A stretch of 64,000 nt of DNA from Dimorphilus gyrociliatus (Eukaryota; Animalia; Annelida): NCBI GenBank assembly GCA_904063045.1, contig CAJFCJ010000024.1, forward strand, positions 801,777 through 865,776, in the 5' to 3' direction. The position numbers and the translations under genes are program-made. The notes under the pieces were generated by a model. It was not told the DNA's origin. It did not search any database and saw nothing but the letters and a program-made list of their open reading frames with translations. Positions 19,306 to 53,966 of the stretch are shown here, in pieces. Within the stretch, counting starts at the first letter, position 1. Every line of letters starts with the position of its first letter.

Positions 19306-22300
19306 ATGTCTCTTAATCAGGTTTGTAGTGTCCATCTACGAATAGATATAGCTAAATACTACGATGTTTTATAGATAGAGACGCTTAAGAGACGTTATGG
19401 CGAAGAAATTGACGATTTTCAACAAGAGTTTGAAAAAAGGGCTGTGAAAGAAGAGCTTAAAAAAGAACTAGATGAATTAAAGAAGAAGTACGGTGAACAA
19501 GATGAATTATTCGCCTATATAGAAAGGATATTTAAAGATATTTATTATAAATATACAGCAAAATTAAAGGAAAAGTTCGAGGTTTGTTTTTATATTCTGT
19601 TTATCAGCTAGGTGGCGCCACCCATAAAGTGTATTGTTTCTTTTTTTTAAAAAAAGTAAATATATTTAGTGTATATATCTATATGCATTCACACTATATC
19701 GTATTTTTGGTAGAAGATAATTACAACCATTGTATAAATACAGCTTTGGCAATTTTCCCACTATTATCTCTTTTTTTTTACCGTGTGGGAAACATCTATA
19801 TAAAGTGTCATATTAAAAATTATAGACAGAACGGGGTCTATTCTAGACCTGTGACTTATGCAAATTATTAATGAACGTAACGAAGCTTTAGATACTTTAT
19901 TGAACAAAGAGAGAGCAGTATAAATATTGTATTGTTTGCAGTAATCCTTTTTTTTTAACTACTATGTATTATAATCTATTAAGTGCTGTACTGTTTTCCT
20001 ATTAATTGATAGTCATAATATTTACCTTACTTCGATAAAACCATATAATTATTATATCTATTCTGGAATAAAATCGTCATTGGTCTACTCTATTGTCTTC
20101 TTTTTTTGTAGAAAGAAGATGACAAATATGCAGAAGCGTTTAAGAAACTATTCGAGGAACAAAAGGAAGAGAATGCCTATACTATCAATAGTCTTAAGCA
20201 AACAATAGATCGTCTTGAGGAGAAACACGAAAACGATGTTGCGGGACTTCAAAAACAATACGAACACGAGATTGTTCATCTCAAGGACGTTGTAAATAGT
20301 CTAAGTCAAAAGCCTTTAGACGCAATTACGGAAGAAGAAGAAGAAGAAGAAGAAGTAGAATCTCCGCAACCTTCTAGAATTCCTAAGAAAAAGAAAGATT
20401 CGCTTTCATCCTATGCTTTAACGGCAATATCCGATTCGGAGGAAAGTGAAGATGAACTAGATCATAGGGAAATTGAAATTGATTTGAAAATTGAAAGATT
20501 AAAGGCCGAATTCGAAGTTGAAAAGGAGAGTTTAAAACGTCTTATAATAAGGAAAGATGAAGAACTTGAATCGAAGGATCGAATTATTAAAAAATTCGAT
20601 ATTGAAATGGAAACACTTCAACGGGAGAACGAAGAAACTTTTCGTAACGTTGAAGAATCTTATAGAAAACGGATTGATAAGATGCAAGAGGAAATCGATA
20701 AAGCAAAGCAAGTAATTAGTTCAAAAGAAACCGAGAAATTAGATTTACAAAAAGTCGTTGATGAACAGGAAGCCACTCTCGCCGAAGCTAGGTCAAGGTC
20801 GAATTCTCAGGATGAAAATATTGAATCATTTGCCAGGAGTACTAATAAATTAGCTATAGATCACGCAATTGAATTAGAAAGTTTAAGAGAAAATCATAAA
20901 ATTGAACTAAAAAAGTTTAGTGATAAGTACGAAAATCTCTGTGATAGTTCAAAATTGGAGAAGAATCAATTAATAAAGGAATTAGAAGAAGTTCGTCAAT
21001 CGAACGAAATATTACGAGATGAAAAGAGGCAATTGAATGATGATATAATTCTATTACAGTCGAATTTTGATACAGAATTAATTAAAGTAAAGTTAGAATT
21101 GGAAGAAAAGCAAAAGTTGGTAATTGAAGACAAGATGAAAATTATAAAACAGCAATCAACCGATGACGATTTAATTGCTGATAAAATGGCTGCTGATAAA
21201 GAGAATTACGAGTTATTAGAAGAGTTGAAATTGGCTCAAAGACAATTAGAGCATAGAGAAATAGAACTTGACGATTTAAGGCAAAAGTATGATAAATTAA
21301 AAATTGAAGGTAAAAATACAGAATTAGAAGAAGAAATTGAAGAATTAAAGAAGAAAATTAATGAAAAAGATATATTAAGCGAAGAATTTGAATTAAAAAT
21401 GAAAAATTCTATTCATGAATACGAAAATAAAGTTAAAAATCTCAGGGATGAATTAGATTTGGCAAGGGAAGATTTTAAAACTAGTCAAATTAATATGGAT
21501 ATTTACTTAAGACAAAATGAAGAAAAAGACATTCAAAATAAAGATTTAGAAATTCAATTAGGAGAAAATTTAAGTAAATTGAACGAATTTCTTGAACAAT
21601 TCGATAGACAGGAAACTGAAATTCAAAATCTAAAAAATAACTTGGATAGTAAAAATACAGAAAAAACACAAATAGAAAATGAAATAATTCAATTAAAAGA
21701 AGAGAAGTCTCTTTTAAGTTATAAAGTAGACGAATTAAACACTGAACTAGAAAGGGAGAAAAAGAGTTCAGAAAGCTTTGCAACAGGTATTAATGATTTA
21801 TATATAGTATATATACACATTTTCAGCGTAAATTTTCTAAGTAATATTAATTACCTAAAAATAACGCATAATTCATTTATAATCAATATATCGTTTTACT
21901 TTCTCTCTCCTTTAAGCAATGGAAGCGAAATTGGCGGAAGATTTAAGAATACAGGAAGAAGATCATAAAGAAGAAATGGTAATTATTAACATATTTTTCT
22001 TAATTAATTAAAGTATATTATTATATAATATATCATTTAAATATATGCATCAATATTTATTCTAAATTCTAAATAGAGAAGTTTAGTTAATTGGTTTCAA
22101 TGGCGTTCAAAAGTGAGTTTGACCATTTCATGTATATGGATGAAATCTAGTATATATATATATATATAAAAATAGATGAAAAAATTGAATATTGATTATT
22201 AAAAAAAACATCAACAAAGTAATTCATGCATATGATGCTTATTAAGTTAAAAGGTGTTATGTTTATTACCTATATATCGTGCTTAATCTTTTAAATTCTT

Positions 22301-25300: not shown

Positions 25301-28300
25301 AATTAAAAGGAAGAAGGCAATTCCCAAGGTGTTGTTTTTCTTTTTTAAAAAGAAAAACAACTATTCAATATTTTTATTTTATATTTTGATTCAGTTTTTG
25401 TTTTTTAAAAAGTTTTATAAATTGCAGTTTCAGAAGAAGATAACGGTGGGTTATTTATAATTACATACTCTCTAAACAGAATAATAATATATACATCTCT
25501 ATGATATCTTCTTTTACTAAATAATCGGCTTAATATTTAACTAAGCCCAGATAAAACAAAAATAAAAACTTTTTTTACCTTGAAACACCAAAAAAATAAG
25601 GAGGGAAATAAATTTAGGGAGATTTTGGAATGGAGATGATAATTAGTGAGAATATACTGATTACATAGTGAATTATATACGTTATTAATTAGTATATACT
25701 GCAATATATACAGTATATATAATAGTATTCAAATATATATAACCAGGTATAAACTTTTATTTTAGCAATTTTTAAATTCTTTAGCTATACCACAAATATT
25801 CGTCTATCTATTTAATCAATCAATCAATCAATCGATTAATCAATAAATCTATCTACCTACCTATATCTATCTATTTATCTATCTATCTATTATAGATACC
25901 TCTATAGTTTAATTAGTTCTCAACTGGGAAATACTATTTATTTATAATCAATTTTCATACCTGGAAAGAACTTTACAAGTTCTTTACAAGACTGATTTTA
26001 TTCCTATTAATTACTATTTGTACATATATATACTTTTTAATCTGTATTAAACGATTCCTTTATACTTTTATTATATAGATAGTTATTCTCCTATTGATCT
26101 ATCTTCTCCATTTTTTGCTATTGTACAGAAAAAGTTGTTAAAAAACTTGAATATATAGGGAAAGGATTAGATATATACTGTCTATATGAATTATATATAT
26201 ATTCTCTACACGACAAAAGTCTTTATACACCCTTAAAGATATTCCGAAATCTCCTATGTTTTTTAATCATTCTCTGCCAATTTGGTAATAACTTTGCATC
26301 CGATTCGCTTCTAACTCTTCTCTCCATAGGACCGATACTCTCTGCATGTAAATTTAATTAAAACAATTAAAAATTCTCGAATACCATATGTATTTTTATA
26401 TCAATATTTTTTTTTATTATTTGCCTAGTGACATCTCTTATTTGTTTTTAACAACAATTGATATATTTTCTCATAGCCTTTTTCATATATCTTATATAAT
26501 TCTATTTTCTTTTTTTTTCTCCCACTTCTCCTCTCCACTCTCTCCTAAACTTAATATAGGTTTATTGGAAGCATACAATAATCTGGCTAAAGAGAAACAG
26601 GAGGGCGAGAGAGAATTTGAAAAATCTAGAGAATTCATGGAAAATCGTATTAAAGAATTAGAAGTTATGGTTGACGAAGTTCAAAATCAGTTTGATCAGA
26701 TTCTAATGGAGAAAACAAATGAAATTGAAGATTTAAATAATTTATTAGAAGCTAAAGAAAAGCTAATTCAAACAAGTGCAAAATTCTTAAAAGATCAAAC
26801 GGACGAAAGGGAACAAGAAAGGGAAGATTATCAGAATGAGATATTAAAATTAAAGGAAACTTTAAAAGACCAAGAAAAGGATAACTCTAGTCAAGAAAAT
26901 ATGATTCAGAAAATACAAGATCTTGAAGAACAGATGAACTATTTCAAAAATAAACATCAACAAAGCGAAGAAGAATTAAATCAAATGAAAAGTGAAAATC
27001 AAACAGTTCAGAATAGTCTTATGGTAAACAGAAATAAGTTTAGTAACATATTAACTAAATTAATGATATATTACTCTTTTTCAAGGATAACAAAGAGATT
27101 ATTCGAGGTTTAGAAGAAGAGCTAGAATCGTCCTTGAATCATGAACAAGAATTTAAAAATGTTTGTTATATAATACTTAGTTATCAAGAAATCGTACTTT
27201 TTTGTATATTGTTTTATCTAATATCTATTTTTTTTATATATTTATAGAAAATTACCTCTCTTGAAAACGAACTTAAAGATGTTCGGGCCAATGTAAATAC
27301 TCAGGAAAATGTTCTCGAAGAGGAGAAACTCTGTTCACCTCCTCCCGAGGAACACATTTTAACAGATCTTCGAAATGAAGTTGAAACTGCCAAAAGAGGG
27401 GAAGAAAATGCTTTGAAGAGATTAACTGAATTAGAGGAGGAATTAAAATGTAGCCGTAATAACGAAAAGATATTACTGGCCGATAAGGATGGACTCCAAA
27501 ATCAGCTGTTAACAAGTACAGCTTCAATATCTGAACTACGAGCTCAAGTTGACAAGCTTCGAGTGGATTTCGTAGATAGAGATGTTATTGTTGAAGAGAA
27601 TAGTAATCTTAGAGAAGATTTACGAGTAAATAGAGAAATAATATCTGAAAAACAACTTATAAACGATCAATTAGAATTGAAACTTAAAGATTTAGAAAAT
27701 ATCCTAAGACAGAAAGATGAACAATTGGAAAATTTGTTACACAGTAATGCGCAATCTCTTAACGAATTAGAAGATAGCAGAAAGGAATTAATAGAAAAAA
27801 TTGAAAATTTAGAAAGCGATAATGATGAATTAGAAAAACAAAAGAAATCTTTAACTGAAACTTCCAGTTTTCCAGATTTAACGCAAAAATTGCTTGATGA
27901 TAAAAATTTAGAGATTGACGAACTGCGTGAAGAGATTCAAAATTTGAAAAAACATGATAATAGTGAAAATATTACGTTAGCTACGAGAAATAACGAACTT
28001 AATGATGAATTGAAAAATAAACAAATACAAATTGATGATATGTCAATAAGAATTAGCAGTTTTGAAAATGAATCTATTCAATATAAAGAGAGTTTAATTG
28101 AAATGGATCAATTAAAACTTAAGATTGAACAGTACGAAGATGAAACGAATAATTTGAAAAAGAAATTATTACTTGTCGGAGAGGAGAATGAGAGACATAT
28201 TAACGCGATTAATGAAGATAATGAAAATTTAAGGAAAGAAATTGACAAGCTAACTACTAAAAATGATGAATTTGAAGTTGAACATTCCAATTTAAAGGCT

Positions 28301-31300
28301 GAAATAGATAAAATATCTTATTTACAAAAAGAAGATGACACTATTTTGGCTAATAAAAGTAAAGAAGTGGAAGAAAAACTTTTAGAAGTTGATCAGTTAA
28401 AATTTAATTTACAGATGAAAGATGAAAGTTTAATTGAATTACAACAAGAGCTAAATCAAATAAAGGATAACAAATCTGATGAACTCGCTAAAGCTGAAGA
28501 ATCCTTACACGAGGTTAAATCTATGTTGGAAATATCTGAAAAAATGAAAGATGACCTTAATAATCAACTTTTAGAATTACAAAATATCAATAAAGAAAAA
28601 GAGGAATTAATTGATAAGCTAACGGTAGAGCTGGACGCTGCTAAAGCGTCTACAATCGGCCTTGGAGCCGGTGACGTTTCCAATGTTCAAGAGTTACAAT
28701 CGCAAGTTTTACATTTAAAGGAACATTTAGAAATTAAAGAAATTAGTATCGAGTCTCTGGCAAAAGACCTGGAGTTGTCTACTAATAAGGTAAAGGAATT
28801 GCAAGAACAATTGGATTGTTCCATTAGCGAATCCGATAATAAACTAAAAGAAATTGAAAACGAATTAAAGGCTGAAAGAACCAAAGTAGATTTCTTAGAA
28901 AACGAGAAAAATAATGCTTTAGATACAATAAAAAACTTAAATGAAGAATTTAACGATTTAAAATTATCCTCTCACTCTGCAGAAGAAGAAGCGAAGTCTC
29001 AGTTGGAGGATCTTCAAGAAGAAAATTCCCAACTTAAAAATGAGAAAGTCTTACTTCATGAAAATATCAATAATCTCACAAAGGATCTTGAAGAATTTAG
29101 AGCCCAATTAGTAAAGAAAGACGATTCTCAGATAAAATATGAAAGTTATGTAGATATTGAAAATTTACAAAAAGAAAAATCTGAACTATTAACAAAAGTA
29201 CAAGATTTAACCAAAGAAATTGAATCAGTTAAAGAGGAGTTGGATTCGCTTAAGAAGGACAAAACTGAAGACGTTGAAAAGTCCAAATCGGAAAAGACTT
29301 TGGAATTGGAAGACGTTAGAGAAGCGTTACGGGAGGCAAATGAAGAGATAAAACGATTAAAGCTATCAAATAACAAAGAATTATTAAGAATAAATGAAGT
29401 CAATAAAGATCTACAAAGAGAAATTGAAGAATTAAAAATTTGCCACGAACAAGAGCTTTTAGAGTCAAAACTTCGATTGGAAGAAACTGAGAAATTTCTA
29501 GAAGATTTAAGGAATGGAAAAGAGAATGAGAAAGAAGTTGTTCAATCTCTTTCAGACGAAATAGAGGAAACAGTAGCTTTAGATGCACAAATTCAAAGTT
29601 GTCTTGGTACGGAACATGATCAGAACACGGTCAAAGTTAATTTCGAAGAAGACGAAGATTTAGACGAAAAGTTACAGCAAGTTTTAGGCAAATTAATATC
29701 GAAATCTGTCAAAGTGTTAACATTGTCAGAAATAGAATTTATTTCTAAACAAAATGCAGATTCTGTAGTAAATGGGATGATGCATATGGAGGCAAAGGAG
29801 GATACTTTCGAAAACGAGGTGGAACCTTTCATCGATTCTATTAAAAATTTGAGCATAACTTTAGAAAATTTAAAATCTGATGAGGTTAGTATTCCTTAAT
29901 GATTTATTTATCTAATTAATTAATTAATCCATTTTATATTAGCAGTTAGAAAATGATTGGCGACAAGATTTAATACGTTCAGTTTATGACGTCTTAATTC
30001 AAGATCGCAATATATTACGTACAGAGATATTAAAATTAGATGGAAATGCAGATTTAACCCTTATCGAAAGGAAAATAAATGGAATTGCAGCCGCTCATGA
30101 GAGAGCTTTAAATGAATTACATTCAATTGATAGAAAAACGCTTTTAGATGAGATAAGAAGTCTAAAATCGAAATCTTCTAATTTTGAAGATAGAGAAAGA
30201 CAGGAGTTTACGAGAGAAATTGGACATTTAAAACGTCAACGTTCGTATATGTTTATATACTAATATACAAATATATAAATATTTATTATTCATCCTTTGC
30301 AGTCAAACTATCTGAGTATAAAATTGAGCAAGAAAAAGTACAATCTGAAGAAATAAGATCGTTGTTAGAAGAAGAAAAATCTAAATCTAGACAAACTAAT
30401 GTTCAATTATTTTCAACACAAACTGAATTATCTGATTTAAAATTAGAAATTAATGGAAATAGAAATGAATTAGCTAATCTGCAAGATACTCTTGAAATTG
30501 AACAAGGAAGAGTTATGACAGCTACGTAAGTTTATTTAAGTGATTTCTTTACTTTGTTTTATTCTTTGATTATTCTTCTTTCTTTCTTTGTATCTTTTCT
30601 TATGTTAAATAAAACATTACAGTATACTTTCTATATACATATATCTTCTAACAATTATAATATATTCATTTATAATATCTTAGATCTGTCTTGGAACAAA
30701 TGCTGTAAGTTTATAATCACATAACTCATTATGCACATAGTTTGTTAAGTATTATGTTATAGGGATAGAGCATCACACGATACAAAAGATTTATATTTAT
30801 CATATTCTATTTTCAAATATTGTAGATAATCATCTTTCTCTTTTTACTTATTTCTGTTTTAGTAAACATGCACTTGTATGGAAAATATATATATATATAT
30901 ATATGGATGCTATTACTCATTTCTTTGTTTTACTATGATTTATTGTTCATAGAACACGTCTGTAAAAGATACGAAAATTCATTTTGAATTATGATTATTT
31001 TAAATGGTACAGAAATTCATTGGAAAATGAGAGGAGAAAGATAGCAGAACTTCAATCGTCTCTAGCTGTTGAAAAAAGTAACGCTGATAGAATTCAGCAA
31101 GAACTTTTAGCCGAAAGACAAAATTCTAAAAGGGAAAATGATCGTCTAACGTTAAGTCTACAAAGTAAACAAGCGGATTTAGATAAAGAAAAGGAAAGGC
31201 GTCTAGAAGCGCAGAATAACTTTGATAGGGAGAGAACGATGGTATCCGCCTTACGAAGAGATGTTGAAGCGGAAAGAGATCAGAGTAAGACAATTCAACA

Positions 31301-40096: not shown

Positions 40097-40778
40097 AATT
40101 TATCATTTTTATGCTAATTTTACAATACAATTTAATTAAAAATTACGATATCCTAAGGAAATATATTCATTATTAATAAATTATTAACAATTAATGAAAG
40201 AAAGTAATCTCTATTGTTCTTATAGTTGACAGATATGTATACATTGTTTTGTTTAGCTAACTAATCTCTTTTCTTGTGTATTCTTATCTTTTCTGTGAAA
40301 TAACAGAATTTTAGAGTTGAACAAGACTTTTCTTTACGCCAGAATGTGTGATATATGAATATACAATATAAATGTATATATATATATATATATATATACT
40401 AGAGCTTATAAAGCAGTATTATTACTTCTTTTCCTTAATATACAATATTGAAAAGTTAAACCGACACGTCTTTAGTAATTATCATCCAGTGAGATAAAGG
40501 CTTTAATGAAAGAAAAACCTTTCTTTTGTTCGTCAAATAACTAGTCATGTTTAGGGAACAAACATATGGTTATATCCTGAGGTTAAAATACCAAGAATAG
40601 TTATCTTATTCATTTTCGTACTAAATTTAATTTATAGCTCTTAAAGTCTAATATTTCTTTTATTCTATGTAGAATTATCAATAGTTAAAACACGAATGCT
40701 TCATGGTTTGCTTATCTTAAAGTGATGAATTGTTTTTTTTATTAAAAAAGAGCCTCTATTTTTATTTCTAGCCATTTT

Positions 40779-43700
40779 TTAAAGCCAATGAAAAACTAGA
40801 TAAGAAATTATTGCAGTTAGACTGGACGAAAGTAAAAATGTTGCTGAGTTTGTTTGTCTATTCGTTGTCGATGATGGGCTTTTTGTTGTTGATGATGGGT
40901 TTGTTGTTGTTTCAACATATTCGGTTGGTACCGTATAAGCTACGAAATAATTTCCCCTTGGTGGTCTTCCAGCCCAATGGCCTCCGCAATTTAAAACAAT
41001 ATATTGTTTTCCTTTATATCTAAATAACAAGATTATTTTACAAAATTACAAGATAAGAATCATTTTAAAGTGAAACGAAACGATTGATAATAATTATCTT
41101 TAAGAGAGATAAAGTCTTTTTATAGTCTCCAAGTACCTGTAAGTCATTGGAAGAGAAGTACAATCGTGAGTTAACTCCTCAGATTGCCATAATTCTTTTC
41201 CAGTCAGTACGTCATGTACCCATATTTTATGATCCTCAGATCCGGCTCCAATTGCTATTCCACTACCCAAAACTAGTTGAGGGGAGAGAGCTTTCCTATA
41301 AAGTAATAGAGATATTTATGATGATGTAGAAATATTAAATTACGCCTATAATATGTTTACCTTGCACCAATGTTTCTCCCCTGGTCCGTTTCAAATGGAT
41401 AATGTCTACCGTATGGTTTCCTCCATCGAATTGTTGCATTATTTAAGTTAATCGCAATCATTTCCGAGTATGGACCATCGTAACAGAAGGAATATTCATC
41501 TGGAGCTCTTTTTTATTTTTAGAAAGATAAAATTATAATAAGTAAAGAGAAGAGAGAAATCTATTGGAATAAGACTCACGAAAAACGTTTATGACACATA
41601 TTATATGGAGATCGTGGAGGATTTGGATTAGGTTGAGATCGACACCAAGACGTCTCGTTCTTTCTCATCAGTTGTCTAACTATTTAGTTTAAGTAAGAGT
41701 ACAGCCCAAAAGAAAAAGAAGAAAAAGATAATGATACTTGTATATTAAATTACAAATAATTTATAACTAACGCATAATTATGTTGTTAACGATAACTATT
41801 CCAATATTTTCTTTAGGAAAAATAGAAGTACTTTGCCAATTGACCCCTCCCATATCTCCAGGTATTGAAATAATACTTTGATCTAATCTTGGTGGAGTAT
41901 ATTGCTAAGTATTTTAAAATCTTTAATATGCATGTTAATTTGTAATTAGCGTATAAATACTCGTCCTAATCCATCTGTAACTTTAGCAGTTTCAAATAGA
42001 AGTTTAGCACAGTCATCTCGGTTTTGGTTGTAAGGATGATTAACCAAACTGATATCAAAGCTCAGACGACTCAACTGACCTAATGGACCGACTACTCTCC
42101 TTTGAGTTGGACTAGTCCTTTCACCTGGTACCTTTTTAATTTTAATTGAAAGAATTTTTAAATTTAACAACGTAATAGTATAGTATACCAACAGTGCTGG
42201 GTGGAACGAAAAATTCCTCTGTTGGAATAATTTCAGTACCGTTTATGGCGTCGAACATAAACATAGATCCAGTCTTTGTAGGCTGAAATAGTTTAAAATT
42301 TATAAAAAGACGTAAAATAACTATAAGTTACTTGAATATTACGACTATCAGATTAAATGAACTTACGTATAAAACCACTTTAATACTCTTATCATCTTTT
42401 AAAATTGTTGTAATTGTTGGACCGGCGGCTCCATCCTTTTAAGGGGAAAAAGGCTGTTATTATATTGTTGCAATATATTTTTTATCATATGGAAATATTA
42501 CGTAATTCCAAAGGTCATGTTTGACAAATTGCTGATGCCATAATTTTTTCCCAGAGTGAGCGTTAAGAGCAATTACAGAGTCTGTGTACAAATTGTCTCC
42601 TAAGCGATCACCGCCGTAAAAGTCATAATGTGGTGACGAGGAAGCCATATAGACAATACCAGTTTCGCTATCACCTGCTAATGGAGCCCAAACATTGCCT
42701 CCACCGTTATATTCAGTTCCATTTTCCCATGTACTATATCCTGTATCATTTTTATCAACGGGAATGACATAGAATCTCCACTTTAATTCACCAGTTTTAG
42801 GATCAAAACCCCTAGGTTGGCCTTTAGGTGTATCGCTTGTTAAATAATCTGATATTGCTATATTTTAAAAATAAGAATGTGGACCTTAGCTAAATAATTT
42901 TTCTTTGTTTTTGTATCATATTAACTTACAATCTCCAACAATTAATGTATTATTTACTATAATAGGAGCTGAAGTAAAGCCATAAATAAGAACTAATTTC
43001 CCACCGTCATTGAAGTAGGCGTTTTTAATATCTTCAGTTAAATTCAATTTACCCTATGATATTTTATATATATATATATATAAGAATGACAGTTTACTCT
43101 TTCAATTTGTTGTGTTAAGTATCAAAAAGGAAAATAACTACAAACATAATTGCCAAATTCAGGGCAAAATTTTCCTGTTGCTGCATCAACAGCCACTAAA
43201 AAAGCCGATGTAGTAGCCATATATACTCTTTTCCTGCAAAGGTCTCCATCTGCCTTAGTCTCATCAAGCCATGTTGCAACGCCCCGACAAGTCCTATAAG
43301 GATAAAATACACCGATTACTTGGAATTGAGAGATAGTCTGATTTCTAGTGTATTTATATTAAAAAACAAGATAGCCCAGTAGATTTTAATTGATTTTAAC
43401 AGATTATGTACTTTAATAACCATTTGACAATTTGATTCTTTTCAAATTATCATTTGCAATTTCTTGGACAACTGAATATAAAAAACAGATTAAAAATACA
43501 ATTTTCTTTGTGTTTATTACTTAGTTGCTCCAATACTAATATGCTCTCTAAAATCTTTGGTGTCCATATCCGTATTATTCCAGATTTCCGTTCCATTTTC
43601 AGGATCAACAGCAAATAATTGGTTTCTTGCGGTGCAGAAAATTAACAAGTCCCTGTCTTTAAATGAGCAGAGGATACACTTTATTTTTCTTAAGTGATTA

Positions 43701-44037
43701 AACTCTCCATGGATAAATTAAAGAAAAATATTATTTTACCTTTTCCAGAGCCATCATCGATAAAAACTGGTGTACTTTGGTGAACGTATTTCCCATCAGT
43801 GTCATGGGCTTTTGTAAAATTCCATGCTTTGTTAATATATTGAATATTTTCCTTTGTTATATCACTAAGAGGTGAATATCTTAAACCTTCATTTGTGTTG
43901 GTATACTGGGGCCAATAAACTATGAATAATACAATAATTGCAAGTTCAATGTTAATAAAAGAAACGAACTTACCAGAGCCTGGTAAAGCGCAATAAAGTT
44001 TAATAAGGCAAAAAATTAATAAATGTTTAAAAGTCAT
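40779..44037 (-). CDS. Bacterial-type PQQ-dependent quinoprotein dehydrogenase (glucose/quinate/shikimate family, 8-bladed propeller) with signal peptide and GPI-like tail; 14 exons, 705 aa
   Basis: Exons 43974-44037, 43740-43919, 43521-43656, 43146-43293, 42930-43053, 42502-42857, 42367-42435, 42193-42282, 41961-42131, 41772-41904, 41580-41679, 41361-41507, 41137-41295 and 40779-41019 are all GT-AG with consistent phases and total 2118 nt. Motifs WPQY..[103 protein letters not shown] and PMTYRYKGKQYIVLNCGGH. Confidence 0.9.
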
Positions 44038-45754
44038 CTTGTTTCTTAGTAAAGTGGAAAGGATAAGCCTTTTATGGAAATTTTTTGATAAGAAACTGAT
44101 TAGTAAAAAGATAAGCAAAACACGTAAAACTCCTTAAAGATAAAATAAAAAGAGAATCTATTACAGTAGAGCAAATGGAGCTCTACCTATAATTTCTAAT
44201 TAAATAAAATTACTGTTACATCCTATTTACAAAGAAGAAAGTATATATAGTTATGTATTAAACAAGTTATCTATTTTGTATTTATCATAATAAGAGATAA
44301 GTAAATTTGTAAACAGCCGACTAACTCGTTTAAGAGAGATTATTTATATCTTTTTGTAATAAATAATAAAATAATAATTAAAATGCGATAGTCTTTCGGT
44401 TTTACAGTAGAACTTTTTAATAGAGCTTGTTTTTATTGGAGAGTAGTTATCAGCTTTGCAGTTGAAAACTTTAACTTTCTATATTAGAATGCCAATATAA
44501 TAATAAAACTTTAATCCACCTGACTAAAATCTTTATGAGCATTAACGGACCAGATAATTAGAACGGTAGATAATTATATAATGTATATTTTATATAATAA
44601 GCATAATAATACCAATCCGCTTAAAATCAAATACTGAAATATTTACCAAGGTTTTACACAGACACTTACACTTTTAGAATATATACTGTACATGTTACTT
44701 TTTACCTAAATTAAAAATACCACAGAATCATCATCATTGCAAAAGCTAACATATAGCTGAAAAAAGATAAGAAAAAAACTTAACGTCTATGAAAAAGATA
44801 AATAGTTGCAAAACAAAATAAATGAAGACTAGGAAGGAGAGTGGAATCTAAAAGAGAGATTTGCAAGAGAAAGAGTTATCAAACAGCTTTATAAATTAAA
44901 TTGATCGAAGAAACAAGAAAGACATCTCGCTTCTTTTTATTATATATAAGAACGTTATATACTGTGTTAAGGAGAATACGAAAGGTTACTTTTTTTACAT
45001 ACTTAATTGTTTTTAGTTTCCTTAAAAAAACGGCATGCTTTCAACAAAATATCTTTGTTATTATCATTATTTTTCTTCTTAACTGTTTCCGCCTCGCTTC
45101 CTATATTCCTATATATATATATGTATATGTGTCATTGTACTCTACATATCCATGTATACATTTCTTATTTATTTGCAAGCGATAAATCTTATTTTTCTTG
45201 AAATGTACCATTCTTCTTATGTCTTCGATAGTATTAAATCTTTTAATTAATTAGTTACAGCAGATTGATATTCCTGAAAAAGATTATATCAATTAGATAA
45301 CGCGTTGGTTAGACAATTCGACTGATTCTTCTAAGAGGAAAAGAGAGAGATTGAGTAAAATTGGATAAGAGAATACAAGATATAATGATTGAAAGAGAAA
45401 GCCGAGAAAAAAGAGGTTAAGTAAAGGAAAATGAGCTTTTAGCGAAAGATATGTTTCACAAAGATTGTTTCAAAGGTAAATATTTATTAATCAGTGTATT
45501 TTTATATTATCTCATTAGTTGTCCTGATATCTTAAAATTAGTTGAAATATGCACAAGGTTTTCGATAGAAAATGGGGAGAAATTTATTATTCTCAATGAA
45601 TAAAAAGCTTCATTAATTTGTCTCTATGTTTAATGATAAAAATAAGAGTTACATGATAAGATTATGCATAAAGTAAAAAATTTACTGAAAAAATCCAATA
45701 CGCCAGAGACACCTAGGGTAAGGCTTATTCCTTTTTCTACAGTTATCTTCCGGC

Positions 45755-46819
45755 ATGAGAAATTCAACAGTTGAGGCGAATAACTCAACTAATTTCCATA
45801 GATCTAATAGCATACTGATATTGATAATCAACAGCTTGAATTTGTATGGTTTGCCCATCATATGTATTGTTGGTTTGGCAGGTAATTGTTTATCTATTAT
45901 AATATTCTCGTCTAAAAAATTCAAGCAGTTTCGGAATCAAACTTGCTCTGCCTACCTTTCTGCTCTGGCTTTTTCGGATAGTTTTATCTTGGTAACATTA
46001 TTTTTATCATGGTTAGGTCTGTTCGAAATACGAATAGTTAACTATAAAGGATTTTGTCAGCTTTTACCATACATAACATTCGTCTGCAGTTTTCTCAGCA
46101 CATGGATTATCTGCATTTTTACATTTGAAAGATTTTTTGCTGTTTTCTTCCCATTGAAATTAAAACTAAGGAGTACGAAGAAAGGTGCAACGAAAGTTTT
46201 AGGAGGTTTAGTGCTATTCGCATTGCTACTCTTTCCGTTTCCACTCTGGTCATATTCTGTGAAAGATGGAATATGCGTACATAAGTTAGACTATAAAGGT
46301 TTAATTGAAATAATGAACGCTATGGATGCACTAATAACACTATGTGTACCTTTTCTAATAATTGTACCATTAAATATTGCCATTGCTGTAAAATTAGCTA
46401 AATACGTTACGTTGGGAAGTCATAGATCAGTGAAAACTTATAACGAATCCAGGAGCAGGTCTATGATAACGCAAGATGATAACGAGACCGAATTACAGCC
46501 CTTAGACAACGAAGGGGAGAGTAATAATATTCATCACCAAAGGCATTCCAGAGTTGTGCAGAGGAAATCAGCAAAGTTATTGATTGTTATAGCAACAGCA
46601 TTCTTTTTGTTGAGTACACCATCTTACGCTTTTAAATTATACGTAATATTAAATCAAGAGCCAAATAATCAAAAAATGGTAATAACTGCTAAAATGAGAC
46701 AATTACAGGAAATTTTTCAGGTGTTGTATTATATAAACTTTGCAATTAATTTTTTCTTGTATAGCTTATCATCAAATGCTTTTAGAAATGCGTTAAAACA
46801 GCTGCTATCAATTTGTTAA
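45755..46819 (+). CDS. Intronless rhodopsin-class 7TM GPCR (FMRFamide/TRH-receptor-like peptide GPCR group)
   Basis: 354-aa ORF with seven hydrophobic segments. GN in TM1, YLSALAFSD in TM2, TFERFFAVFFPL (DRY equivalent) and NFAINFFLY in TM7. N-terminal NST sequons. Confidence 0.9.
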   Translation: MRNSTVEANNSTNFHRSNSILILIINSLNLYGLPIICIVGLAGNCLSIIIFSSKKFKQFRNQTCSAYLSALAFSDSFILVTLFLSWLGLFEIRIVNYKGFCQLLPYITFVCSFLSTWIICIFTFERFFAVFFPLKLKLRSTKKGATKVLGGLVLFALLLFPFPLWSYSVKDGICVHKLDYKGLIEIMNAMDALITLCVPFLIIVPLNIAIAVKLAKYVTLGSHRSVKTYNESRSRSMITQDDNETELQPLDNEGESNNIHHQRHSRVVQRKSAKLLIVIATAFFLLSTPSYAFKLYVILNQEPNNQKMVITAKMRQLQEIFQVLYYINFAINFFLYSLSSNAFRNALKQLLSIC

Positions 46820-50367: not shown

Positions 50368-50979
50368 TTATTGACCTTTCTTCTTTGAAAATGCGCTTTT
50401 CATTTCATAATAGGATTGCAAAAGTAAAAGTGCAGGTATAACAACCCATATCCCATTATAGAATACCATATAAACCCAGAGATAGAGCCAGTTATTTGTT
50501 GCTAAATTGGGAGATCCTAACAATATATCTGGTACAAAAGTCATCCAACCACCATAAATTTCTCCAACGCATAGAACGACTTGTAAGAAATGCCTGTAAT
50601 GCTTATTTTTAACTATTGCGTAGACTAATACTAAGCACATTGGTCCTTCTACGAAAACAGTTATAATCTCTAATGAAACTATACAAGGGTCTAAGATTAG
50701 CCATCTAGCATCAGCTTTGCCATATTCTTTCCATACTAGTGAAGTCCAATGAGTAGATTTTTCAACAGTTGTTGTAAGTGATAAAATAACGAATGATAAC
50801 TCTAAACTTAAGTGTATCATTGCGTCCCAGATTAACCAAAAAATTACAAATTTGTCAGTTTTCCTTACTGTTTTACTTATTTTATTGGTAATAAACCATG
50901 CTCCAATTGCCATGGCAGCCGTAGCAATCATGGATACTATGGAAACTTGGTTGATTATCGGTTCCGTTTGATCGTCCAT
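50368..50979 (-). CDS. EBPL: Emopamil-binding protein-like (EXPERA domain), intronless, 203 aa
   Basis: WKEYGKADARW, DPCIVSLEI, YRHFLQVVLCVGEIYGGWMTF, SPNL..NWLY and NGIWVVIP..QS match recalled EBPL. Di-lysine-type C-terminus SKKKGQ. Confidence 0.9.
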   Translation of the reverse strand: MDDQTEPIINQVSIVSMIATAAMAIGAWFITNKISKTVRKTDKFVIFWLIWDAMIHLSLELSFVILSLTTTVEKSTHWTSLVWKEYGKADARWLILDPCIVSLEIITVFVEGPMCLVLVYAIVKNKHYRHFLQVVLCVGEIYGGWMTFVPDILLGSPNLATNNWLYLWVYMVFYNGIWVVIPALLLLQSYYEMKSAFSKKKGQ

Positions 50980-52892: not shown

Positions 52893-53966
52893 ATGACTGC
52901 AAAAAAATTGAAAATTATAAATTTATCCATCTTCTTGGCTTTCTTCTATGGATATGGAGATTGTAGAAAGATCTTTCAAGGCTATCAGAATTATACAACG
53001 TATAAAACTGGAACTTTGAATGTTATCCTTACTGTTCCTCATGGTGGTTCTATGAAACCTTCGTCAATTAAGGGTAATACCATAGCATATCTTTAAGTTT
53101 ATGCATTATTACTATTATTAATGATAATCCTTCTCTTTTCAGATAGAACTATTGCCTGCGCAAATTCCGAAGGACAATGCACATGGAAGACTGATTGCCA
53201 TCAACCGACTAGCAACTGCACTCCTCTTGTTGAATCAGACTATAACGTTCAGTTACTAGCTGATACTATTTCCGAGAAACTGAAAGACATAACCGGAAAA
53301 TATCCCTATATTATTCAAACTGAATTGAAGAGAAACAAGTTAGATCCGAATAGAGATAAACCGGAAGCTACACTTTTCGATCCAGAAGCTATTAAAGCTT
53401 GGAATGATTTTCAAAACTATATTAAAGAGGCCAAAAACGAAATTAAGAAAGGCCTTCTTTTAGATATTCACGGTCAGAGTCATATAGAAAAGTGGATCGA
53501 ATTATCATATTTTGCCAAAATTTCTGAAATAAATTCAGATCAATTGCAATCTGATAAGTCATCGATTTATACCATGTCTAAAAGATTTCCGGAAACCAAA
53601 TTTAATGAATTGATTTACGGCAATGAAAGTTATGGTGGTTTGTTGGAATCTAAAGGCTATAAAGTTGTACCAAGTCCTTCTTATAAGAAGCCTGGTTCAG
53701 GCAATTATTTTCCTGCTTATTATATAACAATGGAACACGGTTCGATGAAAGGTGGAAATATCGATGCCATACAAGTGGAAACACCCTTCGCTTATAGAAG
53801 GAATCTCACCTATATTTCTAGATATGCGGAGGACGTTGCCAGTGTTACCGTTGAATTTTTAAAGAAATATTATGGTTCTACATCTAGTGGAGCGGAAAGA
53901 GTTCTAATTTCTATTCCCAGTATGATTCTTTTTATATCAAGTTTTATAATGCAGCTCATAGATTAG
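52893..53966 (+). CDS. N-formylglutamate amidohydrolase-like Zn hydrolase with signal peptide and GPI-like tail (2 exons)
   Basis: Exons 52893-53073 and 53143-53966 (phase 1). Motifs ILTVPHGG, KLDPNR, LLDIHGQSH..IELSY, S.GGLL..GY..VPS, YIT.EHGS and DAIQVE. Hydrophobic N- and C-termini. Confidence 0.7.

Follow-up and report, generated by a model that had tools for sequence, protein, structure and literature searches.

An expressed, intron-rich gene for a PQQ propeller protein

The 64,000-nucleotide stretch of Dimorphilus gyrociliatus DNA analysed here (contig CAJFCJ010000024.1, positions 801,777 to 865,776; hereafter the window) carries on its minus strand, at 44037-40779, a gene for a propeller protein of the bacterial pyrroloquinoline quinone (PQQ) dehydrogenase type. 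Reading from 44100 down to 40700 on the minus strand, we assembled a gene model independently of a first-pass annotation of the same DNA, and the two models coincide: 14 exons separated by 13 introns, a coding sequence (CDS) of 2118 nt starting at the ATG at 44037 and ending with the stop codon at 40781-40779, and a protein of 705 amino acids (aa) uninterrupted by stops. All 13 introns have GT..AG ends and are 54-227 nt long, with a median of 72; the median intron of the published D. gyrociliatus genome is 66 bp (PMC7854359).

Public sequencing runs were aligned to the interval 40600-44200: one genomic run (X1), two transcript runs (X2 and X3) and one transcript run of a related organism (X7). 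The genomic run yielded a single unspliced contig over the whole interval, at a depth of 183, as for the other contigs of that run. The transcript runs yielded contigs of 1756 nt (X3) and 1559 nt (X2) together with smaller ones, all 100% identical to the window. Introns 1-3 and 5-13 are each matched by a joint in these contigs, the ends reading CT..AC in plus-strand orientation. Transcript contigs from two runs thus contain at least 12 of the junctions predicted for the 13 introns, the check that the first-pass annotation had called for; intron 4 follows from arithmetic on the transcript-contig coordinates. The transcripts also settled the ambiguous exon 8/9 junction at 42193/42131. A minor X2 isoform joins 43292 to 43739 and leaves out exon 3, at a depth of 7 versus 43; as exon 3 measures 136 nt, its skipping shifts the reading frame, and this isoform is probably minor or non-productive. 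These data establish a genuine, expressed, intron-rich animal gene.

The exons whose residues are discussed below are placed there; the others, all on the minus strand like the rest, are exon 3 (43521-43656; gene model and X2 contig), exon 4 (43146-43293, TCRGVATW...; PF01011 profile, gene model and transcript junctions), exon 5 (42930-43053; gene model and arithmetic on the X3 contig coordinates), exon 9 (41961-42131; gene model and the 42193/42131 junction in transcripts), exon 10 (41772-41904), exon 12 (41361-41507) and exon 13 (41137-41295), these three from PF01011, the gene model and junctions, and exon 11 (41580-41679), placed by the gene model, alignment and junctions.

Fold and family

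The exon translations match the Pfam profile PF01011, which describes the glucose/ethanol/alcohol dehydrogenase beta-propeller of the PQQ 8-bladed type, in strict colinear order over profile positions 1-589 of 595 (from 1-58 up to 542-589). The propeller starts in exon 2 (43740-43919), which covers profile positions 1-58 and is bounded by transcript junctions, and exon 6 alone matches the profile with E=9.5e-42. The motifs quoted by the first-pass annotation for a Gcd-type order are found in the protein, VYWPQY..RYSPL near its start (exon 2) and GKQYIV..GGH..YFVAY near its end. Among solved structures, quinohemoprotein alcohol dehydrogenases and methanol dehydrogenases are the best matches by sequence. 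Of the NCBIfam models, TIGR03074 (Gcd type) fits best, both for the exons and for the relatives from Owenia and bacteria described below; all of them match it only from about model position 152, i.e., without the membrane domain, and the relatives score under its curated cut-off. PF01011, blastp and TIGR03074 thus agree on 8-bladed PQQ propeller homology over the whole length of the protein. The N-terminal five-helix anchor (~150 aa) of the Gcd type is not present, the alignment beginning at Gcd residue 168.

Two other assignments were considered. The methanol/ethanol dehydrogenase model TIGR03075 scores below TIGR03074, and no adjacent cysteines (the vicinal Cys-Cys ring) occur in the window protein. 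Membership of the soluble glucose dehydrogenase (sGDH)/AA12 type found no support, as the only matches were to 8-blade models of the PF01011/PQQ_2 type.

Relatives in bacteria and in Owenia fusiformis

An exhaustive HMMER search with exon 6 as query was run against 1.84 billion cluster representatives. Among the matches listed, only fragments of 75-76 aa exceed 50% identity, the others being proteins 40-50% identical to the query. The full-length matches whose source or context was examined are bacterial proteins of ~650-670 aa described as quinoprotein glucose dehydrogenase or PQQ-dependent dehydrogenase, and the named carriers belong to the Gemmatimonadota, Bacteroidota, Acidobacteriota and Myxococcota and, in many cases, to the Pseudomonadota. 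None of the soluble bacterial members retrieved carries a tested function, and we know of no characterised member of this ~650-aa group.

One exon 6 representative, P0015, comes from the annelid Owenia fusiformis, which has four paralogs (P0162, P0160, P0015 and P0161; e.g., UniProt A0A8S4Q312) on three chromosomes. A profile built on the animal sequences retrieves the four Owenia proteins, after which the score falls from 953 to 531 bits at the bacterial proteins. In full-length blastp comparisons the window protein is 35-36% identical to P0162 and P0160 and 34% identical to the best bacterial proteins. Owenia is the only named eukaryote near the gene among the matches listed in the exon 6 and profile searches. 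Two related AT-rich, intron-bearing genomic copies, L003 and L005, were found, one in SRR23372229 and one in a Tara Pacific long-read metagenome from coral; both have an extra intron within the counterpart of exon 6.

Shared introns and age of the gene

Two IQ-TREE trees (posterior mean site frequency model, 71 and 93 rows) were rooted on Gcd. In both, the window protein and the four Owenia paralogs form one clade (SH-aLRT 99 and 98), which sits inside the bacterial soluble Gcd-like group; in the 93-row tree its sister is a protein from a Pseudomonadales metagenome-assembled genome (MAG), whose gene lies in a typical bacterial operon or neighbourhood. As the branch of the window protein is very long (2.0-2.9 substitutions per site), we rested the claim of an annelid clade on introns rather than on the tree alone.

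The Owenia loci were fetched and the exons of two paralogs mapped exactly, 15 in each gene, spanning 18 kb in P0162 and 16 kb in P0160. A MAFFT alignment matches 11 of the gene's 13 introns to P0162 introns in column and phase; all 11 have a counterpart in P0160 as well, in 10 cases exactly and in the remaining case to within one column. With ~2000 possible positions, the number of coincidences expected by chance is ~0.1. Among the window introns that Owenia does not share is the one after exon 11 (CDS nt 1571). Introns were therefore present in the gene by the time of the common ancestor with Owenia, and both the gene's acquisition and its intron gain predate the Dimorphilus/Owenia split, as the shared introns and the shared clade indicate. 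The comparison points to one old acquisition followed by vertical descent, and not to a private, recent transfer. Oweniidae are sister to all other annelids. Dinophiliformia have been placed as sister to Errantia + Sedentaria (PMC7854359). With D. gyrociliatus as host, annelid phylogeny and intron sharing would date the gene at least to the annelid crown ancestor.

The gene is thus nested in bacterial diversity, with no close non-annelid eukaryotic relative in the trees or among the matches listed, and it is integrated in its host with respect to surrounding DNA, composition, introns and transcription. A bacterial-type origin, domestication and ancient presence within annelids are well supported by these data.

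Replacement of the catalytic base and selection

The window protein was aligned to E. coli Gcd taken from NC_000913.3. Five Gcd residues, which we take from the Gcd literature to have a role in the pocket, are kept: Trp404 (W274), Lys493 (K362), Asp354 (D221), Asp730 (D594) and His775 (H640). The equivalent of Gcd Asp468 is also kept, as Asp337. The most conserved block lies in exon 6 (42502-42857; PF01011 and PDB alignments), which carries W274, H294, a GDN motif and KHDLWNY; Lys362 lies in exon 8 (42193-42282, PTKTG; gene model, Gcd alignment and junctions). The catalytic base is replaced: where Gcd reads HHDLWD(466)MD, the window protein reads KHDLWNYD, so that Asp466 corresponds to Asn335, encoded by the AAT codon at 42505-42507. 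In PDB alignments this asparagine stands opposite Asp308 of 1KB0, Asp316 of 1FLG, Asp303 of MxaF and Asp327 of XoxF, at the catalytic/metal-ligand position, and Asp337, the first codon of exon 7 (42367-42435; gene model and alignments), stands opposite the extra "+2" Asp329 of the XoxF type. The assignment of the base draws on these PDB alignments and on the residue roles described for the MxaF and XoxF metal sites (PMC8028316).

No variant of the AAT codon occurs in the genomic contig or in the two transcriptomes. The X7 transcript of the relative, which is spliced and ~88% identical, is identical to the window over the Asn335 stretch. L003 (1486-1974) and L005 (2283-2773) read KHDLWDY, with the catalytic Asp kept, and therefore the change from Asp to Asn is derived. 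A Gcd D466N mutant is reportedly nearly dead, although a literature search for Gcd Asp466 returned nothing. The His at Gcd position 461 and the Arg at position 734 are also lost, being replaced by Lys and Trp, respectively. Of 85 near-invariant columns, with a conservation of 93% or more across 86 bacterial homologs, 64 are kept and 21 lost in the window protein, and the Owenia paralogs retain 83-87% of the columns that their sequences cover. P0162, P0160 and P0161 keep the catalytic Asp; P0015, encoded on a 36.7-Mb chromosome-scale contig, has Ser at this position and Gly at the +2 Asp, and catalytic residues were therefore lost at least twice in the animal clade.

A July 2026 preprint by Robinson et al., which catalogues eukaryotic PQQ 8-blade proteins including those of D. 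gyrociliatus and Owenia, assigns in its supplement the pocket label 3D-1N to D. gyrociliatus A0A7I8WA95 (DgyrCDS13300) and the labels 4D, 3D-1E and 2D to Owenia proteins, and reads the A0A7I8WA95 site as a Ca-type metal site (bioRxiv 10.64898/2026.07.14.738520). As far as these entries go, the label 3D-1N fits the window protein (Asp221, Asp332 and Asp337 plus Asn335), and the Owenia labels agree with our alignment, in which three paralogs keep the Asp and P0015 is changed at two Asp positions; A0A7I8WA95 is probably the window protein.

The listed differences between X7 and the window comprise 25 synonymous and 11 non-synonymous codon changes. The resulting ratio of non-synonymous to synonymous rates (dN/dS), roughly 0.15-0.2, suggests purifying selection; dS is saturated relative to L003 and L005, which makes dN/dS unusable there. 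Taken together, the substitutions make ordinary dehydrogenase activity of the window protein doubtful.

Leader, glycosylation sites and C-terminal tail

Hydropathy analysis gives a single hydrophobic stretch at the N-terminus, a signal peptide (MTFKHLLIFCLIKLYCALPGS) encoded with the ATG by exon 1 (43974-44037), whose position is given by the gene model and by the 43919/43974 junction in an X2 contig. The protein has 10 N-x-S/T sequons. Exon 14 (40779-41019; gene model and junctions) encodes the last blade with its GKQYIV..GGH..YFVAY motif, the tail and the stop codon. The tail (40782-40931; hydropathy, sequence and alignment) consists of a Ser/Thr-rich stretch followed, at the very C-terminus, by 19 hydrophobic residues (…NSATFLLSSSLTAIISYLVFHWL); the aligned Owenia proteins are without a hydrophobic tail. 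A leader, a small-residue site, a terminal hydrophobic stretch and no cytosolic tail together would fit a putative glycosylphosphatidylinositol (GPI) signal in both hydropathy and sequence pattern. A candidate AATAAA polyadenylation signal (40761-40766) starts 13 nt past the stop codon, and an X3 transcript contig ends at 40761. The window protein shares with its nearest bacterial relatives the lack of the Gcd anchor of five transmembrane helices, so the absence of this anchor predates the transfer.

Neighbourhood in the window

Base composition is uniform along the window, at ~29% GC, the gene itself having 33-38%; GC at third codon positions (GC3) is 25.8% in its CDS and 31.8% in that of the neighbouring gene. 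This neighbour, 1.7 kb away at 45755-46819 (+), is a single-exon open reading frame (ORF) of 354 aa for a rhodopsin-family G-protein-coupled receptor (GPCR; 7tm_1, E=2.4e-21). Its proximity and the host-like GC3 of the gene argue against contamination. An exon with an EBP domain lies at 50368-50979, with coiled-coil exons farther out; the ordinary eukaryotic neighbours reported in the first-pass annotation were thus found again.

The best named relative of the receptor is a thyrotropin-releasing hormone (TRH)-receptor-like protein of Patella vulgata, only 30% identical, and a copy 83% identical occurs only in unannotated read assemblies. The receptor search gave no rotifer match and no identical annotated protein. 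A bdelloid or monogonont rotifer was considered as host and rejected: D. gyrociliatus agrees better with the intron sizes, with two runs of 2017 and 2020 that bear different organism labels and are both 100% identical to the window, and with the Dimorphilus entry of the Robinson et al. preprint. Two long Glu/Lys/Leu-rich ORFs with strong purine skew (20484-21968 and 27413-29899, both +; 494 and 828 aa) had no Pfam match and look like exons of one large coiled-coil protein. A 281-aa ORF at 53121-53966 (+) matched no Pfam family at E<=0.001 in one scan, and Rfam and tRNA scans of the window found nothing. In Owenia, the P0162 gene lies wholly inside the span of an opposite-strand gene of the DNA polymerase B family (L002:1-30024), presumably inside one of its introns.

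Interpretation

The reading that we favour, with moderate confidence when taken as a whole, is that of an ancient bacterial-derived annelid gene whose product is likely a surface protein other than an ordinary dehydrogenase, kept under purifying selection. The gene would descend from a bacterial soluble, anchor-less Gcd-like dehydrogenase with an 8-bladed PQQ propeller, acquired in an old transfer and endowed with at least 11 spliceosomal introns by the time of the common ancestor with O. fusiformis. Vertical inheritance would have followed, with paralog expansion in Owenia. The signal peptide, the 10 sequons, the Ser/Thr stalk and the GPI-signal-like end make display on the outer cell surface most likely. 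Most of the cofactor-pocket and fold residues examined are kept (Trp274, Lys362, Asp221, Asp337, Asp594 and His640); with Asn335 in place of the base Asp, efficient hydride transfer as a dehydrogenase is no longer likely. A more likely role would be that of a PQQ-, metal- or sugar-binding ectoprotein, or of a very slow or altered oxidoreductase, maintained by purifying selection. GPI anchoring, cofactor binding and loss of activity are steps that we infer.

Several points weigh against this reading. The GPI anchor is deduced from the appearance of the sequence. The annelid clade of the trees could, taken by itself, be a product of long-branch attraction. A homologue as divergent as the window protein would rank below the matches listed in our searches, so that others may exist elsewhere in annelids or other animals. 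Finally, an Asn at the position of the base does not prove inactivity, as Asp337, His294 or His331 could substitute for it.

Of the alternatives, the least improbable, which we nevertheless regard as unlikely, is the function proposed in the first-pass annotation: a dehydrogenase active outside the cell on sugars or polyols, dependent on PQQ of microbial or dietary origin that it would take up in the manner of E. coli apo-Gcd. The fold is intact from end to end with most pocket residues kept, the gene is expressed and under purifying selection, the Asp is kept in L003, L005 and three Owenia paralogs, and co-folding in the preprint, if A0A7I8WA95 is the same protein, puts it in the Ca-type metal-binding tier. 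However, this proposal is weakened by the general base itself, which is Asn335 in the genome, two transcriptomes and one relative, by the loss of the His and Arg equivalent to Gcd 461 and 734 and of 21 of the 85 near-invariant positions, and by the absence of an evident electron acceptor for a surface-anchored enzyme. Given the replaced base and the missing acceptor, binding or a strongly altered function seems more likely than a conventional PQQ-dependent sugar dehydrogenase.

As to origin, a scenario without any bacterial transfer into animals, in which an ancient eukaryotic or early metazoan gene passed down vertically and disappeared from nearly all lineages, is improbable. The shared introns do show deep vertical inheritance within annelids, and a large PQQ-8-blade clade of plant, fungal and metazoan sequences is described in the preprint (bioRxiv 10.64898/2026.07.14.738520). 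Yet in both our trees the annelid clade falls inside the bacterial soluble Gcd-like sequences and not beside other eukaryotes, no other named eukaryote lies nearby among the matches listed, and the preprint's text places its single annelid domain, of a species it does not name there, with prokaryotic lineages and apart from the main clade of eukaryotes. A recent, lineage-private transfer followed by rapid intron gain is more improbable still: a patchy distribution, with Owenia alone among the named proteins in the matches listed, would suit it, but two Owenia paralogs have 11 of the 13 introns at the same position and in the same phase, the animal sequences group together in one clade, the codon composition has been ameliorated completely, and dS is saturated relative to the related AT-rich taxa that also bear the gene. 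The lateral acquisition put forward in the first-pass annotation is therefore retained for its bacterial source and revised as to its reach, since it is not private to one lineage; the vertically inherited orthologs that would have spoken against a transfer, if spread across eukaryotes, are found within annelids and, among the matches listed, not across eukaryotes. Bacterial contamination or an assembly chimera, to which the bacterial nature of all nearest attributable non-annelid relatives might point, has next to no probability in view of 13 spliceosomal introns with spliced transcripts, a single genomic contig spanning the gene at ordinary depth, animal genes on both sides in the window and a GC of 33-38% with GC3 of 26%; contamination and pseudogene readings had both been excluded on spliced transcripts, introns and animal neighbours.

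What the family might mean for PQQ in animals

The use of PQQ as a protein cofactor in animals has been disputed for decades, and we know of no candidate animal apo-enzyme of the classical quinoprotein fold that was available during that dispute. The window gene and those of Owenia qualify as candidates of this kind: they are genuine animal genes and not contaminants, of old date, expressed and subject to selection. As a speculative proposal, to which we give only a low probability, annelids may have inherited, from before their crown, secreted Gcd-like quinoproteins that bind bacterial PQQ, and the Dimorphilus copy, with its Asp-to-Asn change and new GPI-type tail, may be a cell-surface sensor or scavenger of PQQ or sugar and not an oxidase. 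If true, animals would thereby have their first PQQ-dependent proteins, which would offer a tractable handle on whether animals use PQQ. The shared introns unite scattered, tabulated transfer candidates in a single annelid gene family that has a date and a vertical line of inheritance, and the Asp-bearing Owenia copies and the Asn-bearing Dimorphilus-type copy provide a straightforward comparative and biochemical contrast. This significance is bounded by the 2026 catalogue, which already covers the category, and by the probable loss of normal catalysis in the window copy.

Comparison with known systems

With E. coli Gcd and its family TIGR03074, the membrane-bound PQQ-dependent glucose/quinate/shikimate dehydrogenases, the window protein shares the 8-bladed PQQ propeller, for which blastp gives 29% identity across Gcd residues 168-794, and the lack of a vicinal Cys-Cys ring. 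It differs in having a signal peptide where Gcd has its membrane anchor on the ubiquinone side, Asn335 where Gcd has the catalytic Asp466 and, on the side of the window gene, introns, glycosylation sequons and a GPI-like tail. The bacterial soluble PQQ dehydrogenases of ~650 aa (Acidobacteriota, Gemmatimonadota, Bacteroidota, Halieaceae and Pseudomonadales MAGs) are closer in architecture, consisting of a leader and a propeller only; they are 31-34% identical to the window protein from end to end, and the annelid clade is nested among them. In contrast to the window gene, they keep HHDxWDYD and are intronless and mostly GC-rich. The Owenia PQQ-repeat proteins are the sister clade, with 35-36% identity, 11 intron positions and phases in common and a secreted-type N-terminus. 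The differences here are that Owenia has four paralogs with introns kilobases long, that its proteins have no Ser/Thr stalk or hydrophobic tail, and that all but one of these proteins have the catalytic Asp.

PQQ-related enzymes of other kinds occur in eukaryotes. The sGDH-type family is six-bladed, and fungal AA12 proteins, bacterial sGDH and centipede "GDH" proteins belong to it, whereas the window gene matches 8-blade models only. The centipede "GDH" genes are, like the window gene, transfer candidates (PMC9151784), and a multi-propeller PQQ oxidoreductase of T. cruzi was reported in 2026 (PMC13384848).

To our knowledge there is no biochemistry for any metazoan PQQ 8-blade protein. The nearest precedents are the candidates of the preprint, which treats five metazoan domains (one annelid, four arthropod) as candidates for cross-domain transfer (bioRxiv 10.64898/2026.07.14.738520) and which, like the present work, concerns bacterial-type PQQ propellers in metazoans. 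The category has already been catalogued there, and probably the window protein itself, so that the first-pass annotation's remark that no such animal system was known to be described no longer applies. Its main text mentions neither introns nor Owenia, and its available parts give no gene structure, no expression, no link between Dimorphilus and Owenia and no comment on the loss of the base. The present analysis adds a verified gene structure with its expression, connects the gene to Owenia by the introns that they have in common, dates the acquisition and shows that the catalytic Asp was lost while constraint continued.

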